Assembly (NCBI GenBank): GCA_964035545.1
Contig: CAXIUT010000269.1
Location: forward strand, 1 to 34,142
DNA length: 34,142 bases
Direction of reading: 5' to 3'
Source: Bugula neritina
Taxonomy: Eukaryota > Animalia > Bryozoa
The translations under genes and the position numbers were made by a program. This document shows, in pieces, positions 9,596 to 34,142 of this stretch. The notes beneath the pieces are model-generated. The model was given only the letters and a program-made list of their open reading frames with translations. It was not told the origin of the DNA and ran no database searches. Position 1 is the stretch's first letter. Each line of letters opens with the position of its first letter.

Positions 9596-9677
9596 GGGGT
9601 TGGGGTTGGGGTTGGGGTTGGGGTTGGGGTTGGGGTTGGGGTTGGGGTTGGGGTTGGGGTTGGGGTTGGGGTTGGGG
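9596..9677. repeat. Internal telomeric tract (GGGGTT)n, right end of the first minichromosome
   Basis: About 13.5 perfect G4T2 units, 159 nt after the E2 stop, preceded by AT-rich non-coding DNA. Confidence 0.97.
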
Positions 9678-12206: not shown

Positions 12207-13833
12207 ATGGGCATCAAGGCGATTAAATCGTTAGAGAATAACCTTCAACCAGATCCTCTCTTTGAACTCCAAAACATGATCAAAATTAGACACGACCCAG
12301 TCACCAACTACTATCGCTTCATCAAAAAAGTCGGAGCCGGCACCTATGGAGAAGTATTCCTTGCAGAACACTAACAAACAGGCCATAAACGTGCTATCAA
12401 AAAAATAAACACCCTCAAATTCGCAAAAGCAAAAACCATGATTCTCAACTAAATTTCTCTTCTGAAAAGTCTGGTAAAATCAAAATAATAAAGGACCACC
12501 CGAACATCATCAAAGTGTACTAAGTTTTCGAAATGGGATAGTTCGAGTATATCGTCACTGAATATTGTGATGGAAAAGAACTCTTTGATGTTATTCTTGA
12601 CCGTCATTATATTCCTTAGTAAGAAGCTTGCTATATTGCTTATGATGTCGTTTCAGCTATTAGAGGAATGCATGCCAATCGAATAATGCACAGGTATCAA
12701 TCACTTAATCCAGAGATGTCAAGCCTTAAAATGTAATGTATGACTCCAAAACGAAAAGTTTGAAGATAATTGATTTTGGAAGTGGTGTCAAATTTGAAAC
12801 TCCATATTAAACTAGACCAAGAAAAAGAGTTGGCACTGTATTTATCTCTAACTCAGTCCTACTACATCGCACCAGAAGTCCTCATGAGAAACTATAACTA
12901 AAAATGTGACATCTGGTCTTTGGGCTGTCTTTTTTATGTACTTTTAGTAGGAGAACCGCCTTTTCCTGGAGTAGATGACTACAAAGTAATGGAATCTATT
13001 GCTCGAGGAGATCCTCTTAAATTTAGAAGTAATCTTTGGAAGAAAGTATCGTCTAAAGCTAAGACTCTTATCACCAAAATGCTCAATAGATAGATATGCA
13101 AACGTCCAACAGCTGCTCAAGTTATGGAAGATGCATGGTTTCAAGAAAAACTATTGAATAGAAAATTAGATCCCAATGAAAGTCGTAACATAGCTTACCA
13201 CCTCAAAAACATGAGAATGTACAAAGTAAATCATTTACTATTAAGGATATATAAGCTAATGCACTTCAAGAAGGCATGTTAATCTTTATTGTAAACTTCG
13301 TTCAAGATAAAAACGATTAAGCAGAAATGGCAAGATCGTTCAAAGCCCTTGATCTTAACGGAGATGGAGTAATCAGTTTATAAGAGCTACAAAAAGGATT
13401 AGGAAAGTATCTAGGAGTCGATGATCACAGAGCTCTAGGAGTAGCAAAACAAATCTTCAAGAAAGTGGATTTGAATAATTCAGGTGCAATCGATTTTTCA
13501 GGTATTTATCAAATTAAGATAGAATTTTTAATGTGTGCCTCTAACATCTAGTTGACAGTAACTGAAGACAATTTAGATATTGCTTTTGATTACATCGACG
13601 CTGTACTGCTGTAATAAAGTAGGATAAAAGTGGAAAGTTGAGCGTAGAAGAAATCAGAGATAAGTTGGGTAGTAATGTGACTGAAGAAGTCTATAATAAC
13701 CTTTTATAAGAATTTGACGTAAATAACGATGGATAAGTACCACTAGAATAACTAGATATCACGAGAAGAGTTTAAAATAATGATGCAAGTACTTGTTCGT
13801 AAAAATAAAAAATCTAAAGAGAAACTTTATTGA
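12207..13833 (+). CDS. CDPK: Calcium-dependent protein kinase (kinase + 4 EF-hands)
   Basis: GAGTYG, RAIK, HRDVKPEN, DFG, YYIAPE, DIWSLG. EF loops DLNGDGVISLEEL, DLNNSGAIDFSEF, DADKSGKLSVEEI, DVNNDGEISREEF. Seven 19-21 nt introns, N-terminal MG. Confidence 0.95.
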
Positions 13834-15251: not shown

Positions 15252-16447
15252 ATGGATTCATTTATGAAATCGCCGGTCGTCATCGACAACGTAACAACAT
15301 CACTATTCAGGGCAGCGGACTCATGAAAGTAGGCTTCAGTGGATAAGAAAAGCGTCCTTTCATTTTTCCTTCCATGCAAATCATCTATTATTCAGAGTCG
15401 GAAGACCTAAATATCAAGTTGTCATACCCAATACCGCTAACCAACTCGAAACATATATCGGAGACGAAATAGCAAGTAATAAAAGAGGACTTTATAAACT
15501 CAAGTATCCTCTCTCTCACGGAGTCATCGAAAACTGGGACGATATGGAAAGCCTTTGGAGGCATGCTTTCAATCTCTTAAAGATATCACCCGATTAATGT
15601 CCAGTCCTTCTCACAGAAGCAAATATGAATCCTACTAAACACAAAAGAAAAATGCTTTAAATCTTTTTTGAAAAATTTAATGTTCCAGCAGTTTACGTGG
15701 CTGTCCAAGGAGTTCTTTCTCTGTATCTTTTTCTTAACAAAGTTTTGCAACAGGAAAATCTACTGGTATCGTCTTAGATTCTGGTGATGGAGTTACTCAT
15801 GTTATACCAGTTTATGAAGGCTACTCTTTGGCCCATAGTTGTGAAAGAATGGATTTAGCAGGTCGAGATGTCACTTCTCATCTTCAAAATTTACTAAGAA
15901 AAAGTGGAGTAAACTTAACTACAAGTGCATAATTTTAGCTTGTTCGATCTATAAAAGAAAAATACTGTGCTATTAGTCTAAGTCCTTTAGAAAAAGCAAG
16001 ATAAAAAAAAGATAAATATACTCTACCTGATGGTCAGGTAGTTTAATTCAGTAACAATGAAAAAGAAGCTGGATAAATCATGTTTTCTCCTGATAAAATA
16101 GGTCTCTAAAATCCCTGTAACTATAATTTAACTCAGCTGTTATCCAACTTCTACAAAACAGTTTGGCTAAAGTAGATATTGACCTAAGAATGACTCTTTA
16201 CAACTAAATTGTTCTTAGCGGAGGCAACACTTTACTCTAAGGTTTTCCTGATAGATTTGTAAAGGAACTTAAAAGATTACTTCCCAACTAGGTAAAAACA
16301 AGAGTATTAGCACCAGGCAAAAGAGATACAATGTGTTGGTAAGGAGGATCTATTTTGGCAAGTTTGCCATCATTTAAACATGTCTGGATTAGCCGTAAAG
16401 AGTACAACGAACAAAAAGAACAGGTTTTCGCAAAAAGAGCGTTCTGA
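15252..16447 (+). CDS. ARP1: Actin-related protein, Arp1/centractin-like
   Basis: [89 protein letters not shown] and C-terminal KRAF favour Arp1 over conventional actin. Four 20-nt introns. Confidence 0.85.
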
Positions 16448-18198: not shown

Positions 18199-19987
18199 AT
18201 GCCTAAGTCAGTGGACATTTATGTTCTTGAATCAAAGATAGGTTCAGGACAGTTTGGATAAGTCTTCAGAGGCTATAGTAAAGTAGATGGACAAGACGTT
18301 GCCGTCAAAAGTATGAGAAGAGATAAAATCAAAGGTAATCCATCTCATATTTAGGAAAGTTCACCTAACTACTAGAAAATTAAATACAAGTACTCCGCAG
18401 CTGCAAAAACAATAACATAGTCAGACTCATAGATATCAAAAAGACTGCCAACAATATCTACCTCATCCTCGAATATTGCAACGAAGGCGATCTCCATGCT
18501 GCTTTAAAAAGTCGCAAAAAGTTTCCAGAAGAAGAATCATTAGAGTGTTTTGTACAAATTCTTCATGCTTTCCAAACCTTGGTCAAAAGCAAAATCATGC
18601 ATAGAGACTTCAAACTGGCTAACGTCCTTAAAAAAGATGGAGTTATCAAAATTGGAGACTTTGGATTTGCAAAACTATTGGGTTCATAAGATTAAATCGC
18701 TTAAACTATCTTAGGATCACCTCTGAACATGGCCCCCTAAATTCTAGACCATAAACCCTACAATAGCAAAGCTGATATCTGGTCAATAGGAGTAGCATTC
18801 TACGAACTCCTCTTTGGAAAGTACATATTTATCCATTCAGAGTTCCATATTCTGCTTCTAATATCATTGATCTTCTCAAAAAAATCAAGAAAGAACCAGT
18901 TAGTTTTCCTCTAAAAGTTCATCCTCACATCTAGGATGTTATCCGTAAAATGCTTATAGTAGATCCAGTTAAAAGAATAGATTGGAATGATCTCTTTCGG
19001 CATCCAGTTACTAGACTGCTTGAAGATAACATTGAACATAATTTAAAATTGAGTTTTTTATGTAAAAAGGAAGAATTACCATTGAATATGTCTAAATTTT
19101 ATATTAAAACAAATAAAGTTATAGAAAATGTTCATGATATTTCTACTAAAAAGGATCTAAATCAATATGTTAAAGAAGTTATGCAACAAAAATAAAAAAC
19201 ACCTTATCAAGGCACCTATATTCGAAGAATTTCATAAAGACAAAATAAATAAAATATCTAAAATATCAAATATCTACCCACAAAAACATAAAAATAAATC
19301 AGAGAAGAATAATCTGATCCAAGAGCTGAACAAAAACTATTATAAATGGCTAAAATATAAAGATTAAGAAAAAATTGTGCTATTATTTTACATTAAAGAA
19401 ATGTATATGCCTTCTTAGGACATCTAGCTGAAGATCTTATCTAAACACACTATAATACATACTACCAATGTCTCTCTTTCCTTCTTGTCAAAAAAGCCAT
19501 CACAATCCTTGGAACTCTCACTCAGTCGATCAATAAAAGATCACTTAAAGGAGTTAAAGAATGGCAAGAACTTTAAAACGATAATGAATTTAGATAAATT
19601 TGTGCGTTTATCAGTTCAGAATAAGAAATCTTTGGCAGATTTTATTAAAAATTGTCTTTAAAAGTATTAGAAGAGGGCACTCTATCAACTTTTTAGGAAG
19701 ATCTCATGCTTTCAGGTAAATTCACAAGAGAAGAAACCAATAATCGTATTTTCTAAAGAGTTCTCAAAGAGTATTTAATAAGAGTTATGGGAAACAACAA
19801 GATTTTGAAATTTGATCAAGCCAGTCACGTCCTCAAGCTCCTTGATTCTCTGAGAATATAGACCAAATTTTCACAATAAGATTTCGATTTTACTGGCTAT
19901 TATCAACAATATGGATAAACTGAGGAAAAGGCCCTCTGTTAAAACGCAGTAGTCAAAGTGCAACAATATCTAATGATCTCTCCTTGA
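18199..19987 (+). CDS. Ser/Thr protein kinase, ULK/Atg1-like, with long helical C-terminus
   Basis: GSGQFG, VAVK, LENEIQVL, IYLILEYCNEGDL, HRDFKLAN, GDFGFAK, LGSPLNMAPE, ADIWSIG. Introns 18335-18354 and 18821-18840. Subfamily is an inference. Confidence 0.9.
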
Positions 19988-20087
19988 TATCTTTTAACTT
20001 ATGTTTAATAATTATATTTATTTATAAAAAATTAGTTCTGATAACTTCTTCAATTATGAATAAAAGAAATGGTTATTTATGACTCAA

Positions 20088-21875
20088 TCATTGACACATA
20101 GTACAACGACTACATTTAGGATTCTTTTTCTTGATATCTTTCAATAAATCTTAAAGAACAAAGGAAGGATCTTTTATTGAACTAGCATTTGGCATAACTC
20201 CATTCCTCATCGCTTCATTTATCACCTGAATTTTATTCATAGTTCCCATAGAAGCAGCTCCTAAGACCTTATCATCACTCTTTCTGATGTAATAAGCAAC
20301 AAATTCCATCTTGGAAAGATCTCCAGTAATATGTAAATCGTCCCATCCTTTAGTAACACCTGTAAAAGCCAAAGAGTTGTTAAATTGTCTAGTCCAAAAG
20401 AAAGGAATATTATCCACTGGGAATTTCTTACCATTCATATTCATGCCTGCAACCGATCCCTGATAGATAGCTTCATTATAGTGTTCAATTCTAGTTGACT
20501 ATCCAGTATACCAGAAAGGATAACTAGCAATATCTCCAGCTGCAAAGACATCTTTTTGGTTAGTCTCCAAGAAAACGTTAGTTTTTAATCCTCCCTGTTC
20601 TCTATCAAGTCCATTAGCAAATTCAAGGACTGGCTCAACACCTGTAGCCACAATTAATACATCTGTAGGAACATTGCCTCCTTCAAGAGCTACGTTTTAT
20701 ACCTTTCCATCTCCATCAATTTGTCTAATTTTGACATTTGTCTTTACATTTACTCCATTCTTTTAGGATAATTTTTGTAAAACTGATCCTACCTTTTCAC
20801 CAAGAACATGACCCAAAGGAATCTTTTGCCCTTCTAACACAGTAACATTCAGATCTTTTAGTCCAAGTCGAATCGACGAAGCCAATTACATACCAATAAA
20901 TCCAGCACCAATGATAGTAACATTCTTTACTCCTGGAGCTCTAAGAGCAGCATTGATATCCTGATAATCCTTCTTATTTCTAAGACTAAAGTATGGAACC
21001 TGATTAAGTCCCTTGATAGGAGGAATTCTATTTCTCATTCCAGAAGCTATCAACAACTTATCATAAGGCAAAGAATCCTTACCCTAGATATTAACACTTT
21101 TATTTTAATAGTTGATTCCAGTAACAGTAGCTTCCTTTACCACTACGATTCCATTATTATCGAGAGATTATTGGTTACGAATGGCTGAAGGTGGATAGTT
21201 AGGATCAAGATATTTACTCAAAAGAGTTCTATCATATGGTAAATCTGCTTATTTGGTAACCAAATATATATAACCTTTATATCCTGTTTTTCTGAGAGTA
21301 TCAGCAGCAGATAGACCTGCACTTCCTGCTCCAATAATAACTATTTTCTGATCTTTGTTTACATTATCAGCTCCGATCTATTTATACTAAGGACCTGAAC
21401 TCCATGAAGTTTTAGGAAGAATAACTCGTATTTTGCCATCAATTCTTTCAACTTTAAATGATTTTAGTCCTCCAAAAACAGGACCTTGCTCTTCCTGTCC
21501 ATCTCTAATCGAAAAAGCAGCATTATGAAGCGGACATATTAATTTATCTCCAACCAATAGGCCTTTAGCCAAGTTGAAACCAAAATGAGCACATTTACTT
21601 TGCACAGAGAAGATGCTTCCTTGATAATTGATAACTAGAATAGTATCTTCAGGTTTAGGTCCAACAAGCAATTCTCTGACTTCTCCTTCTTGAAGATCAT
21701 CACTAGTTTAGATAATTTGCATTTCCTATCCAAATACTTTAGATGATGTGAACCAAGCAGAAAGGGAAAGACCTAGTGTGGCCAATCCTGCCTTTACCAT
21801 GTGAGGTCGAGATGTGAAGAGAGGCGAACGATTGATTCTAGTCAATGATTGTAGGAATAGTTTTCCAACCTTCAT
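20088..21875 (-). CDS. AIFM3: AIFM3-like Rieske [2Fe-2S] + FAD/NAD oxidoreductase (595 aa)
   Basis: Rieske CAH...CPLH, GAGSAG, LPYDRTLLSK, YDKLLIASG, GAGFIGME, VFAAGDIA, RIEH, IPFFWT. Basic Ser-rich N-terminus resembles a mitochondrial presequence. Intronless under TAR=Glu. Confidence 0.9.
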
Positions 21876-22035
21876 TTTATGATATATCTTTATCTACTTT
21901 CACAAATATTCCTGATTCAACTTATAACTCACCATTTTCTTAAAATCAGATAAATCTAATAAATAATATAACATTAACTAAATAACAATAATAGCTCTAA
22001 AATGTGATTATTAATCATTTCAAGGATTATTCTTA

Positions 22036-23075
22036 TCATTAGCATTACTGATTGGTATTTTTTATGGCGAAGCAGGAGGTGGATTCTCTTCAACTGAATG
22101 CTGCTGCTGAGTAACATTCATCTTCTATTGCTTCTTGCTCATCAAAGATGATGACTGATATCTTTTTCTTTGAGCACCCACCAATTGTGACACAATTTCA
22201 ATCTAACCCCTTAATTTTAGTATATTACCCTCAGTTTATTGTATTACTGTTTATTGCCTGTTCAAATTATTTACTATATTTTATAGTTCTTTCAACTTCA
22301 TAAGATAGTTTCGCTTGTAGACATGCTAGTACTTGCCAATGGCTTCTTTCTGTTTTTTTAACTCTTAATATCTTTAAAAATGGATTTCTTCAGCAATGTA
22401 GTTCTCCTGCTTTGAAAACTGCTACATACGCAAATCTACAGCTTTCTGCAATTATGCTCCCTTCTCCTTAAACCTCTAATTCTTACTATTTATGGTCTTC
22501 AAATGCTATTCATATTTTTTATTTTTCTTAAACTCTGTTCCCAACTTTTGCTCCTCAATCATCAATCGATCAAGCATTGAAGTATTATTAACCAAATCTC
22601 TTCCCTGCAATTCTGCATTCCTCTTGAGTTATCGATTATTTTTTATGACACTTTTTATTTTAGCCTGTAGCTGCTGTCCTTCAATATTTAAATCATCCAA
22701 AAAGTTAGGCTTAGATGATAATAACTTAATACGTTCTTCATGTCTTGCCAACTAATTGTTATAAGTATTCATTCTAGTTTCATTTGCTTTTTTTTCATCT
22801 TCAAGCAAAATCAAAGTCCCTTCCTGATCTTTTGATGTCTTGTTCTTTTAATTTTTACCCAAATTACTAAAAGCTTTCTTTTCCATATGGAAAAGCACCT
22901 CTTAGTTAAGCTATTTAAGACAGGCTCTTAATTTTTAATATTCTTTCCAAATTTGTCCTTCATTCAGCTCACTATAGTTGGCCAACTTGGTCATATGTTC
23001 ATAACGTTGTGTGTAGCTAAGTTGCGGATTGGCTATCGTAGGTAAAGAACCTCTTGATCCTCCTCGAACACTCAT
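22036..23075 (-). CDS. Hypothetical coiled-coil protein
   Basis: MSVRGGSRGSLPTI... followed by a long E/K/L-rich frame, a probable intron at ~22210-22228 and TGA 22038-22036. The 3' frame may contain an indel. Confidence 0.65.
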
Positions 23076-23188
23076 TACTTTATTTATATTTAAAGAAACT
23101 AAAGCAAGTTGCAAAAAGGAATAAAAAGAATCTTAATTATCAATCTATTTTGAAATATTGCTAAGAAAAAAATATATTTGATAATAAT

Positions 23189-23985
23189 ATGGGAGGTAGC
23201 GAATAAAGTAGAATAGAAGCAGGTCGAAGGCACTCACCAGAATATCTATCAAACAAAATAAAATAAAATCTCTCTTAGGAAGGACGACTTAAACTCTCAC
23301 ATCAAGCTAACATCTGGGAAATTTGTCAACATCTAGCTCTCAACTACTCCTAATGGCAAATCAAAGAAATCTACCTCGGTATATCGCCATCCATCAAGCA
23401 AATGATATGATTGCAGGAGAAGTAATATAAGAAATATCAAAAATCAATTTCTAAAAAGCAAAAACTCCTCTCAAAGTACTAGCTCTCAGTATTGATAAAA
23501 TAAAACAGATCATAACGATATTCAATGCGATAATTTGAAATATTTCAGAGGAGCATACTTCAATACCCTTCTCATGCTCTATCTAGGTACTTACTTTATA
23601 ATCTAGGTACTCCCATAGTTACATAGGTATCATTCTTACAAGTAGACCACAATAAAATAGCCAGCGATGGATGTTACTATATAAGCAAAACGGCTCTTAA
23701 ACGTCTGCAAACCCTTGACCTCTCTCACAACCTTATCAAAGATAATGCAGCTGCTCATCTTGCCAATAGTAACCTTCCATCTCTGCTTAATTTGATTATC
23801 TGTAGATTTTTACCAATTTAGCTAATAATCAGATGAGTTTTAAAGGAATTCGATAGTTTTCAAATGCTCAATGGCCTTCATTAGCTTTTCTTCAAGCTAA
23901 AGATAACTAATTCTAACCTACCAAATAAATGGAAAAGTTGGAATTTAGAACAGATATGAAAATGTTCAGACTCGAACTACAGTGA
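23189..23985 (+). CDS. Leucine-rich repeat protein (26-aa repeats), possibly N-myristoylated
   Basis: MGGS start. Repeats LKVLALNHNDI, LLMLYLDHNKI, LQTLDLSHNLI, LLNLIISNNQM. Phase-1 introns at the same repeat position: 23379-23398, 23489-23508, 23587-23645, 23802-23821. Confidence 0.88.
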
Positions 23986-25298: not shown

Positions 25299-25374
25299 GG
25301 GGTTGGGGTTGGGGTTGGGGTTGGGGTTGGGGTTGGGGTTGGGGGTTGGGGTTGGGGTTGGGGTTGGGGTTGGG
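25299..25374. repeat. Internal telomeric tract (GGGGTT)n
   Basis: About 12.5 G4T2 units with one G5 variant. Confidence 0.97.
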
Positions 25375-29676: not shown

Positions 29677-29759
29677 GGGGTTGGGGTGGGGTTGGGGTTG
29701 GGGTTGGGGTTGGGGTTGGGGTTGGGGTTGGGGTTGGGTTGGGTTGGGTTGGGGTTGGG
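29677..29759. repeat. Internal telomeric tract (GGGGTT)n
   Basis: About 14 units including GGGGT and GGGTT variants. Confidence 0.96.
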
Positions 29760-34050: not shown

Positions 34051-34142
34051 GGGGTTGGGGTTGGGGTTGGGGTTGGGGTTGGGGTTGGGGTTGGGGTTGG
34101 GGTTGGGGTTGGGGTTGGGGGTGGGGTTGGGGTTGGGTTGGG
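34051..34142. repeat. Right telomere, (GGGGTT)n
   Basis: About 15 G4T2 units running to the window end. Confidence 0.98.

Follow-up and report, generated by a model that had tools for sequence, protein, structure and literature searches.

The window analysed in this work is the whole of contig C278 (34,142 nt), which begins with (CCCCAA)n at 1-99 and ends with (GGGGTT)n at 34051-34142. Its genes can be read in one code only, with TAA and TAG as sense codons and TGA as the stop, which identifies the window as a ciliate somatic chromosome, namely a telomere-capped mini-chromosome with G4T2 telomeres. On the forward strand lies an LRR protein gene that contains, besides three single introns of 20 nt, a segment of 59 nt composed of three intron-like units, U1 to U3. 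The features of this gene are given below, L053 being a related ciliate sequence described later.

23189..23985, + strand: LRR protein coding region, ATG at 23189, TGA at 23983-23985; 225 aa, repeats of 30/26/26/26/26 aa
23379..23398, + strand: single 20-nt intron, phase 1, after LxxLxL; position common to L053
23489..23508, + strand: single 20-nt intron, phase 1; position common to L053, where it is 19 nt
23509..23586, + strand: 78-nt exon, one LRR, ending ...CTC TAT CTA G; 78 nt in L053 too
23587..23606, + strand: unit U1, 20 nt, intron-like, GTACTT...A(-6)TCTAG
23607..23626, + strand: unit U2, 20 nt, intron-like, GTACTC...A(-6)CATAG
23627..23645, + strand: unit U3, 19 nt, intron-like, GTATCA...A(-6)AGTAG
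23646..23801, + strand: 156-nt exon, two LRRs, starting AC CAC AAT AAA; as a query it gave ortholog fragments of 71-82% identity
23802..23821, + strand: single 20-nt intron, phase 1; position common to L053

The LRR gene and its 59-nt array

All intron sites of the gene are of phase 1 and lie immediately 3' of the LxxLxL strand. On the 51-aa exon, the Pfam models LRR_6 (E 0.0022) and LRR_4 (E 0.0026) both remain under the curated cut-off, and the LxxLxLxxNxI periodicity is clear by inspection. The same exon used as a query gave 375 matches at E <= 0.001 among representative proteins, of which the long multi-stretch ones look like repeat proteins. No paralog of the LRR exon was found in the assembly, where the gene is single-copy.

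An earlier note, made from the letters of the window, had described three abutting GTA...TAG units at 23587-23645, and this was borne out: on the forward strand the segment reads CTAG|GTACTTACTTTATAATCTAG|GTACTCCCATAGTTACATAG|GTATCATTCTTACAAGTAG|ACCAC, that is 20+20+19 nt, in the reading context of CTC TAT CTA G before and AC CAC AAT AAA after it. U1, U2 and U3 alike start with GTA, end with TAG and have an A at -6, and 3' and 5' splice sites are juxtaposed as TAG|GTA at 23606/23607 and 23626/23627. Three of the eight splice combinations are free of a premature TGA, namely removal of all three units, of U1 alone and of U2 alone, and the remaining five lead to TGA. Removal of U1 only or U2 only stays in frame and adds 13 aa, so the in-frame +13 aa product proposed earlier for the loss of a single 20-nt unit is true for either of these two. 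The 26-aa period is retained only with all 59 nt removed, and the gene model agrees with the earlier description of a regular 26-aa LRR flanked by exons of 78 and 156 nt.

Contigs of public sequencing runs cover the array with zero differences (X1 record 5, 23508-23673; X2 record 12, 19520-23673; X3 record 21, 23614-23842). The locus occurs in runs X1-X4, which sampled the host with which this ciliate lives and whose contigs are unspliced and DNA-like; no deletion joints across the array were present in the contigs of these runs, and the sequence on which the earlier claims were built is thereby supported. No RNA run containing the locus was found among the indexed sequencing runs. At 23662-23773 the LRR exon is present in runs X1 and X2 in two contig versions each, of which the first agrees fully with the window and the second departs from it at 6 positions over about 112-130 nt (about 5%), which suggests two diverged alleles. 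No variant of the array itself was seen.

Tiny introns of the ciliate

The motif GTA-N-A-N3-AG shows in the window a peak at exactly 20 nt, with 45 matches versus about 17 at other lengths. Introns were validated by continuity of conserved proteins, and outside the LRR gene 11 of them (nine of 20 nt, two of 19 nt) were accepted on this basis.

15291-15310, 15376-15395 (GC-AG), 15723-15742, 16117-16136: 20-nt introns of the actin-like gene
12474-12493, 12694-12713, 13226-13245, 13603-13622: 20-nt introns of the CDPK gene
12838-12856, 13737-13755: 19-nt introns of the CDPK gene
18335-18354: 20-nt intron of the kinase gene

With the three single introns of the LRR gene, all of 20 nt, this makes about 14 validated introns, the longest being 20 nt, and the range of 19-21 nt that the earlier note gave for the other introns holds for all of them. 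An A at -6 is present in every validated intron inspected. The lengths of U1, U2 and U3 are inside the narrow length class of the organism, including its 19-nt class validated at 12838-12856 and 13737-13755. As only about 14 introns were validated, rare long introns removed in a single step could exist.

Two sites in the actin-like gene show how far the motif can be relied on. Removal of the GC-donor 20-nt intron GCAAATCATCTATTATTCAG at 15376-15395 is needed to join FPSI|VGRPK, hence GC-AG tiny introns occur in this ciliate. The segment GTATCCTCTCTCTCACGGAG at 15504-15523 matches the motif (GTA, A at -6, AG, 20 nt), yet it encodes a conserved 14-residue actin segment; as it lies inside a conserved actin exon it must stay unspliced, and the minimal motif is therefore necessary and insufficient for splicing. 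Perhaps this segment evades splicing through its GAG acceptor and C-rich interior.

Introns of 35-85 nt proposed by two home-made codon-based gene finders were rejected as spurious, the finders being too weak in an AT-rich, TGA-only code; one such intron was disproved by hand inspection. In a literature search of incomplete coverage, neither abutting tiny introns in ciliates nor a fixed 19-20-nt class turned up.

Relationship of the three units

A scan of the window for chains of units returned the triple at 23587-23645 and one doubtful 19+18 pair, with no others. From an off-peak motif rate of about 2.5e-4 for each position and length it follows that a real intron would be adjoined by two further units of 19-21 nt with an expectation of about 2e-6, and chance is a negligible explanation. 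The units share 12/19 (U1-U2), 8/19 (U1-U3) and 8/19 (U2-U3) identities against a background of 9.8 +/- 1.7, and no copies of the units within 2 mismatches exist in any small contig. A recent tandem duplication or minisatellite is ruled out by this background-level similarity, as the earlier note had concluded from the internal differences between the units.

One direct repeat of 11 nt is placed over two successive junctions:

23581-23591 and 23601-23611, + strand: direct repeat ATCTAGGTACT, copies exactly 20 nt apart, placed over the exon/U1 and U1/U2 junctions

Once the splice-signal positions are allowed for, its p value is about 0.01, which gives a weak hint that U1 may stem from a duplicated exon/intron junction. 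Reviews cited in PMC13685798 and PMC12862383 list tandem duplication of an AG|GT site among the mechanisms of intron gain, and the repeat of ATCTAGGTACT exactly 20 nt apart resembles its expected trace. Unlike in such gains, the remainder of the units is unrelated and the synonymous sites are saturated in comparison with L053, so a duplication origin is neither demonstrable nor datable.

Orthologs in related ciliates

The 51-aa exon was searched against 1.84 billion representative proteins, and the DNA of the matches is represented by L053, L054, L055 (= L056, L057), L058 and L059. The matches are short ORF fragments with 51-82% identity, that is, genomic read-throughs of related ciliates. In each of the five relatives a single intron splits the identical codon in phase 1, between an exon end ...L.L G and a start AY CAY AAY, and its length is 20 nt in L053, 22 nt in L054, 21 nt in L055, 19 nt in L058 and 21 nt in L059, versus the 59 nt of the window. 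In L055 synteny extends to the adjacent zf-C2HC_2 gene.

L053, the closest of these relatives, has all four intron positions in common with the window gene, and its upstream exon is also 78 nt long. The spliced proteins align end to end (225 aa in the window with 59 nt out, 223 aa in L053 with 20 nt out). The junction-spanning segment is FNTLLMLYLDHNKIASDGCYY in the window versus FNTLLTLYLDHNKIASDGCYY in L053, and FNTLL(M/T)LYLDHNKIASDGCYY is conserved. With a single intron at the site in five relatives and this end-to-end alignment, the reading of the whole 59 nt as intronic is strongly supported, and the triple array is, by the same comparison, derived from a single intron, a lineage-specific gain of two units (1 -> 3). 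An origin by loss of LRR exons, which the earlier note had suggested, is refuted by these data: exon length (78 nt) and all four intron positions are unchanged in L053, and the relatives have a single intron at the site and no extra exons.

Between the window gene and L053 pN is 0.20 and pS 0.76, and the LRR gene is, judging from these values, under purifying selection. The synonymous sites of the pair are saturated and their remaining introns cannot be aligned. A resemblance of the L053 intron to the 5' half of U2 and the 3' half of U3 was rejected as insignificant, the other introns being fully diverged and pS saturated.

The intron at this site is of 21 nt in several relatives, among them L055 (2014-2034) and L059 (725-745). 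Read-through of such introns is also seen in the relatives' ORF fragments P0061 and P0089; for P0061 a length of apparently 24 nt was derived from the protein alone. Introns of 21 or 24 nt are multiples of three and carry no stop, so prokaryote-style gene callers read straight across them. In other ciliates introns of 3n length are said to be counter-selected.

A second array and the counts of abutting units

The assembly G000 (216 Mb) is mixed and contains a standard-code eukaryotic host together with ciliate mini-chromosomes, so statistics over the whole assembly are unreliable for the ciliate. Host contigs C1-C9 use the standard code, reach 35.6 Mb and carry LTR-retroelement ORFs, including a Ty3/gypsy-type polyprotein ORF. 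Host and ciliate were compared as C1-C9 versus small contigs (L001-L020, L004:612-5282, L050), and in the motif length counts the 20-nt intron peak was absent from C1-C9.

Abutting units recur in a second ciliate gene, a reading that we draw from protein alignments:

C272:29702-29741 (L052:1501-1540, - strand): abutting unrelated units of 20+20 nt, GTATTAATTTTATCATGTAG|GTAACAATTTCAAGACATAG, in a DHHC palmitoyltransferase gene

The gene matches Pfam DHHC with E 8.7e-27. Its ATG exon (MPKLFQTWPGRNRFFC...) joins the DHHC frame only if all 40 nt are removed; the unspliced frame has a TGA and lacks an ATG. The 270-aa product predicted after removal of 40 nt aligns over its full length to the uninterrupted ORF of the related ciliate L060 (143 identities, score 766), and every other splice option scores <150 against L060. 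Neither L060 nor L062, another related ciliate, has an intron at this site, and the change in the C272 gene is accordingly from 0 to 2 units. A search for homologues of its N-terminal exon found none.

The strict 20+20 pattern has 59 matches in G000, nearly all of which are host satellites. Outside C1-C9 it is found in two identical-unit, satellite-like pairs on C239, at C272:29702-29741 and at the 23587-23645 locus; the ciliate contigs thus hold two strict 20+20 matches, and three 20+19 matches lie in small contigs. An excess of abutting pairs was not seen in these counts, the 20+19 total of G000 being 37 versus 26 for the control, which we take as equal. The genome-wide excess of phased AG|GT expected by the earlier note was consequently not demonstrated by the pattern counts (20+20 and 20+19 in G000). 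Abutting arrays are rare and do not form a genome-wide system.

Two further 20+19 motif pairs, C179:5342-5380 (-) and C182:9229-9267 (+), both end in purine-rich GAGGAAG; in each, the second half is probably an exonic sequence that happens to match the motif behind a genuine intron.

The host contigs contain many minisatellites of 20-nt period with the unit GTA...CAG or GTA...TAG, the triple-unit pattern giving 231 matches versus 14 for the reversed one. Examples (L021-L050) are C3:6765031-6765793, C4:24289515-24291042, C3:431741-431940 and C2:31510293-31510492. The minisatellite of L050 begins precisely at an exon/intron boundary (..TTATACAG|GTAAGTGTCA..). On inspection of their flanks these repeats were rejected as intron arrays; they appear to be splice-junction duplications within ordinary long introns.

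Splicing of the array

We consider it probable that the 59 nt are three complete and independent tiny spliceosomal introns with zero-length exons between them, removed one at a time. The 5' splice site would be paired with a branch A about 14 nt and an acceptor about 20 nt downstream, each unit would be recognised as an ordinary intron, and three successive excisions would follow. With U1 out, the exon end CTAG would meet the GTAC of U2 and make a normal 5' splice site again, so the process would be formally recursive through AG|GT; as the units are self-contained, any order of removal would work. We infer stepwise removal from the following facts. Within U1 the donor is already followed by a branch A and an acceptor at the usual spacing, and a skip of 59 nt is unprecedented among the validated introns. 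The unit interiors are unrelated to each other or to other sequence of the ciliate contigs, and their internal signals are all perfect, as would be expected of signals in use. No long removed segment was found other than exact multiples of the unit.

More tentatively, the spliceosome of this ciliate may act as a strict ruler with a limit of about 20 nt per reaction, under which introns would grow by whole units and recursive splicing of arrays would be obligatory. If one size only is permitted, an insertion in or beside an intron would persist only as a whole functional unit, and such survivorship would explain why the long removed segments (59 nt here and 40 nt in the DHHC case) consist of whole units joined end to end. 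The material suggests that introns here lengthen only in whole units.

The 59 nt could also be one intron, spliced in a single step from the donor at 23587 to the acceptor at 23645 via the branch A of U3, with the internal AG|GTA as historical leftovers. The orthologs argue for removal of the 59 nt and say nothing on its manner, and the relatives accept 19-24 nt at the site, so the size limit is not fully rigid. We nevertheless regard single-step removal as unlikely: the outer donor would have to bypass a branch A and an acceptor that stand in perfect position for it at 20 nt, the validated introns of the window are all <=20 nt, and both long segments comprise a whole number of units whose internal signals are complete in spite of their unrelated interiors, a state to be expected only if these signals matter. 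Nor is there secondary structure to shorten the distance, as no RNA structure looping out 40 nt of the 59-nt segment was detected (z +0.8).

It is hardly probable that the array reflects damage, in which insertions beside the original intron impair splicing and the gene copy decays or is down-regulated via frameshifted, TGA-terminated transcripts. The premature TGA of five splice combinations out of eight would suit such a course, as would the single-copy state of the gene in the assembly and the failure to detect expression in any indexed run, the runs with the locus including no RNA run. The frame is nevertheless intact from ATG to TGA, the other introns and the exon ends are conserved, pN is much below pS versus L053, the array is identical across runs of two studies and the signals are perfect in every unit.

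Quite improbable is the splicing of one 20-nt unit only (U1 or U2) with translation of the other 39 nt, which would yield a protein of 238 aa with a 13-residue insertion in the LRR, possibly as a regulated isoform. Both of these removals keep the frame and meet no TGA, and the retained U3 reads VSFLQV, a mimic of the LxxLxL strand. Against this, two retained units would match the full intron signals by chance with a probability of about 1e-7, the five relatives have only an intron of 19-22 nt there and read-through peptides unrelated to the insertion, and 13 additional residues disrupt the 26-aa period.

That the segment is a germline, TA-bounded internal eliminated sequence (IES) of Paramecium type, removed as DNA, can be practically dismissed: possible TA...TA boundaries (23585/23644) would give the same product and short Paramecium IESs include lengths such as 59 nt, but the contig is a telomere-capped somatic mini-chromosome, the segment is at full depth in the DNA contigs of three runs with no deletion joint, its ends do not fit TAYAG and each third of it is a perfect intron unit.

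Comparison with known systems

Successive removal of abutting units, the reading that we prefer, has a partial counterpart in fungal stwintrons, where a splice signal of the outer intron is split by the inner one and the order of removal is fixed. In both cases more than one splicing reaction would be needed to clear one intronic segment. Unlike in stwintrons, the units of the array abut, each of them is complete and their order of removal would be free. Nested splicing also occurs in C. neoformans (10.1101/224170).

Recursive splicing via zero-nucleotide exons is described for long introns of Drosophila and mammals and for the 375-nt intron of Cryptococcus neoformans BOT1, which is made of 210+165 nt (10.1101/224170). 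The array resembles these cases in having AG|GT inside the removed segment, in the 5' splice site that would be re-formed at the exon end and in a mature mRNA that would keep no trace of it. In the known cases the introns have hundreds to hundreds of thousands of nt, and removal in one step is also possible. The array differs in its length of 59 nt, with units of 19-20 nt, and in that stepwise removal would be obligatory.

Very short introns are established in other ciliates: in Stentor coeruleus 92.8% are of 15 nt and 7.2% of 16 nt, with the branch A at position 10/11 (= -6) (PMC9505925), and in Loxodes the mode is 17 nt (PMC11441545). The introns of the present ciliate are like those of Stentor and Loxodes in their very narrow length class, the GTA...AG ends, the A at -6 and the AT-rich interior, and unlike them in belonging to a 19-20-nt class; abutting units or unit-length multiples are not described in PMC9505925 or PMC11441545.

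The question addressed by such arrays is whether the spliceosome measures a distance or short introns merely drift to a minimum. The LRR gene, with 3 units versus 1 in its relatives, and the DHHC gene, with 2 units versus 0, are natural experiments in this respect: tolerance of nothing but whole units would mean that length is measured. If the proposed stepwise removal is true, recursive splicing would be extended from very long introns to the shortest known. Gene-finders for such genomes should permit abutting introns.

Internal telomere-like repeats

Apart from its ends, the window has (GGGGTT)n at three internal places, 9596-9673, 25299-25371 and 29688-29735, as arrays of 48-78 nt in identical orientation, each followed by unique sequence. 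One of them reads GVGVGV within a predicted ORF, and a contig of run X2 spans the array at 25.3 kb. They may mark sites of alternative fragmentation or breaks that were healed, or may come from a join made in the assembly.
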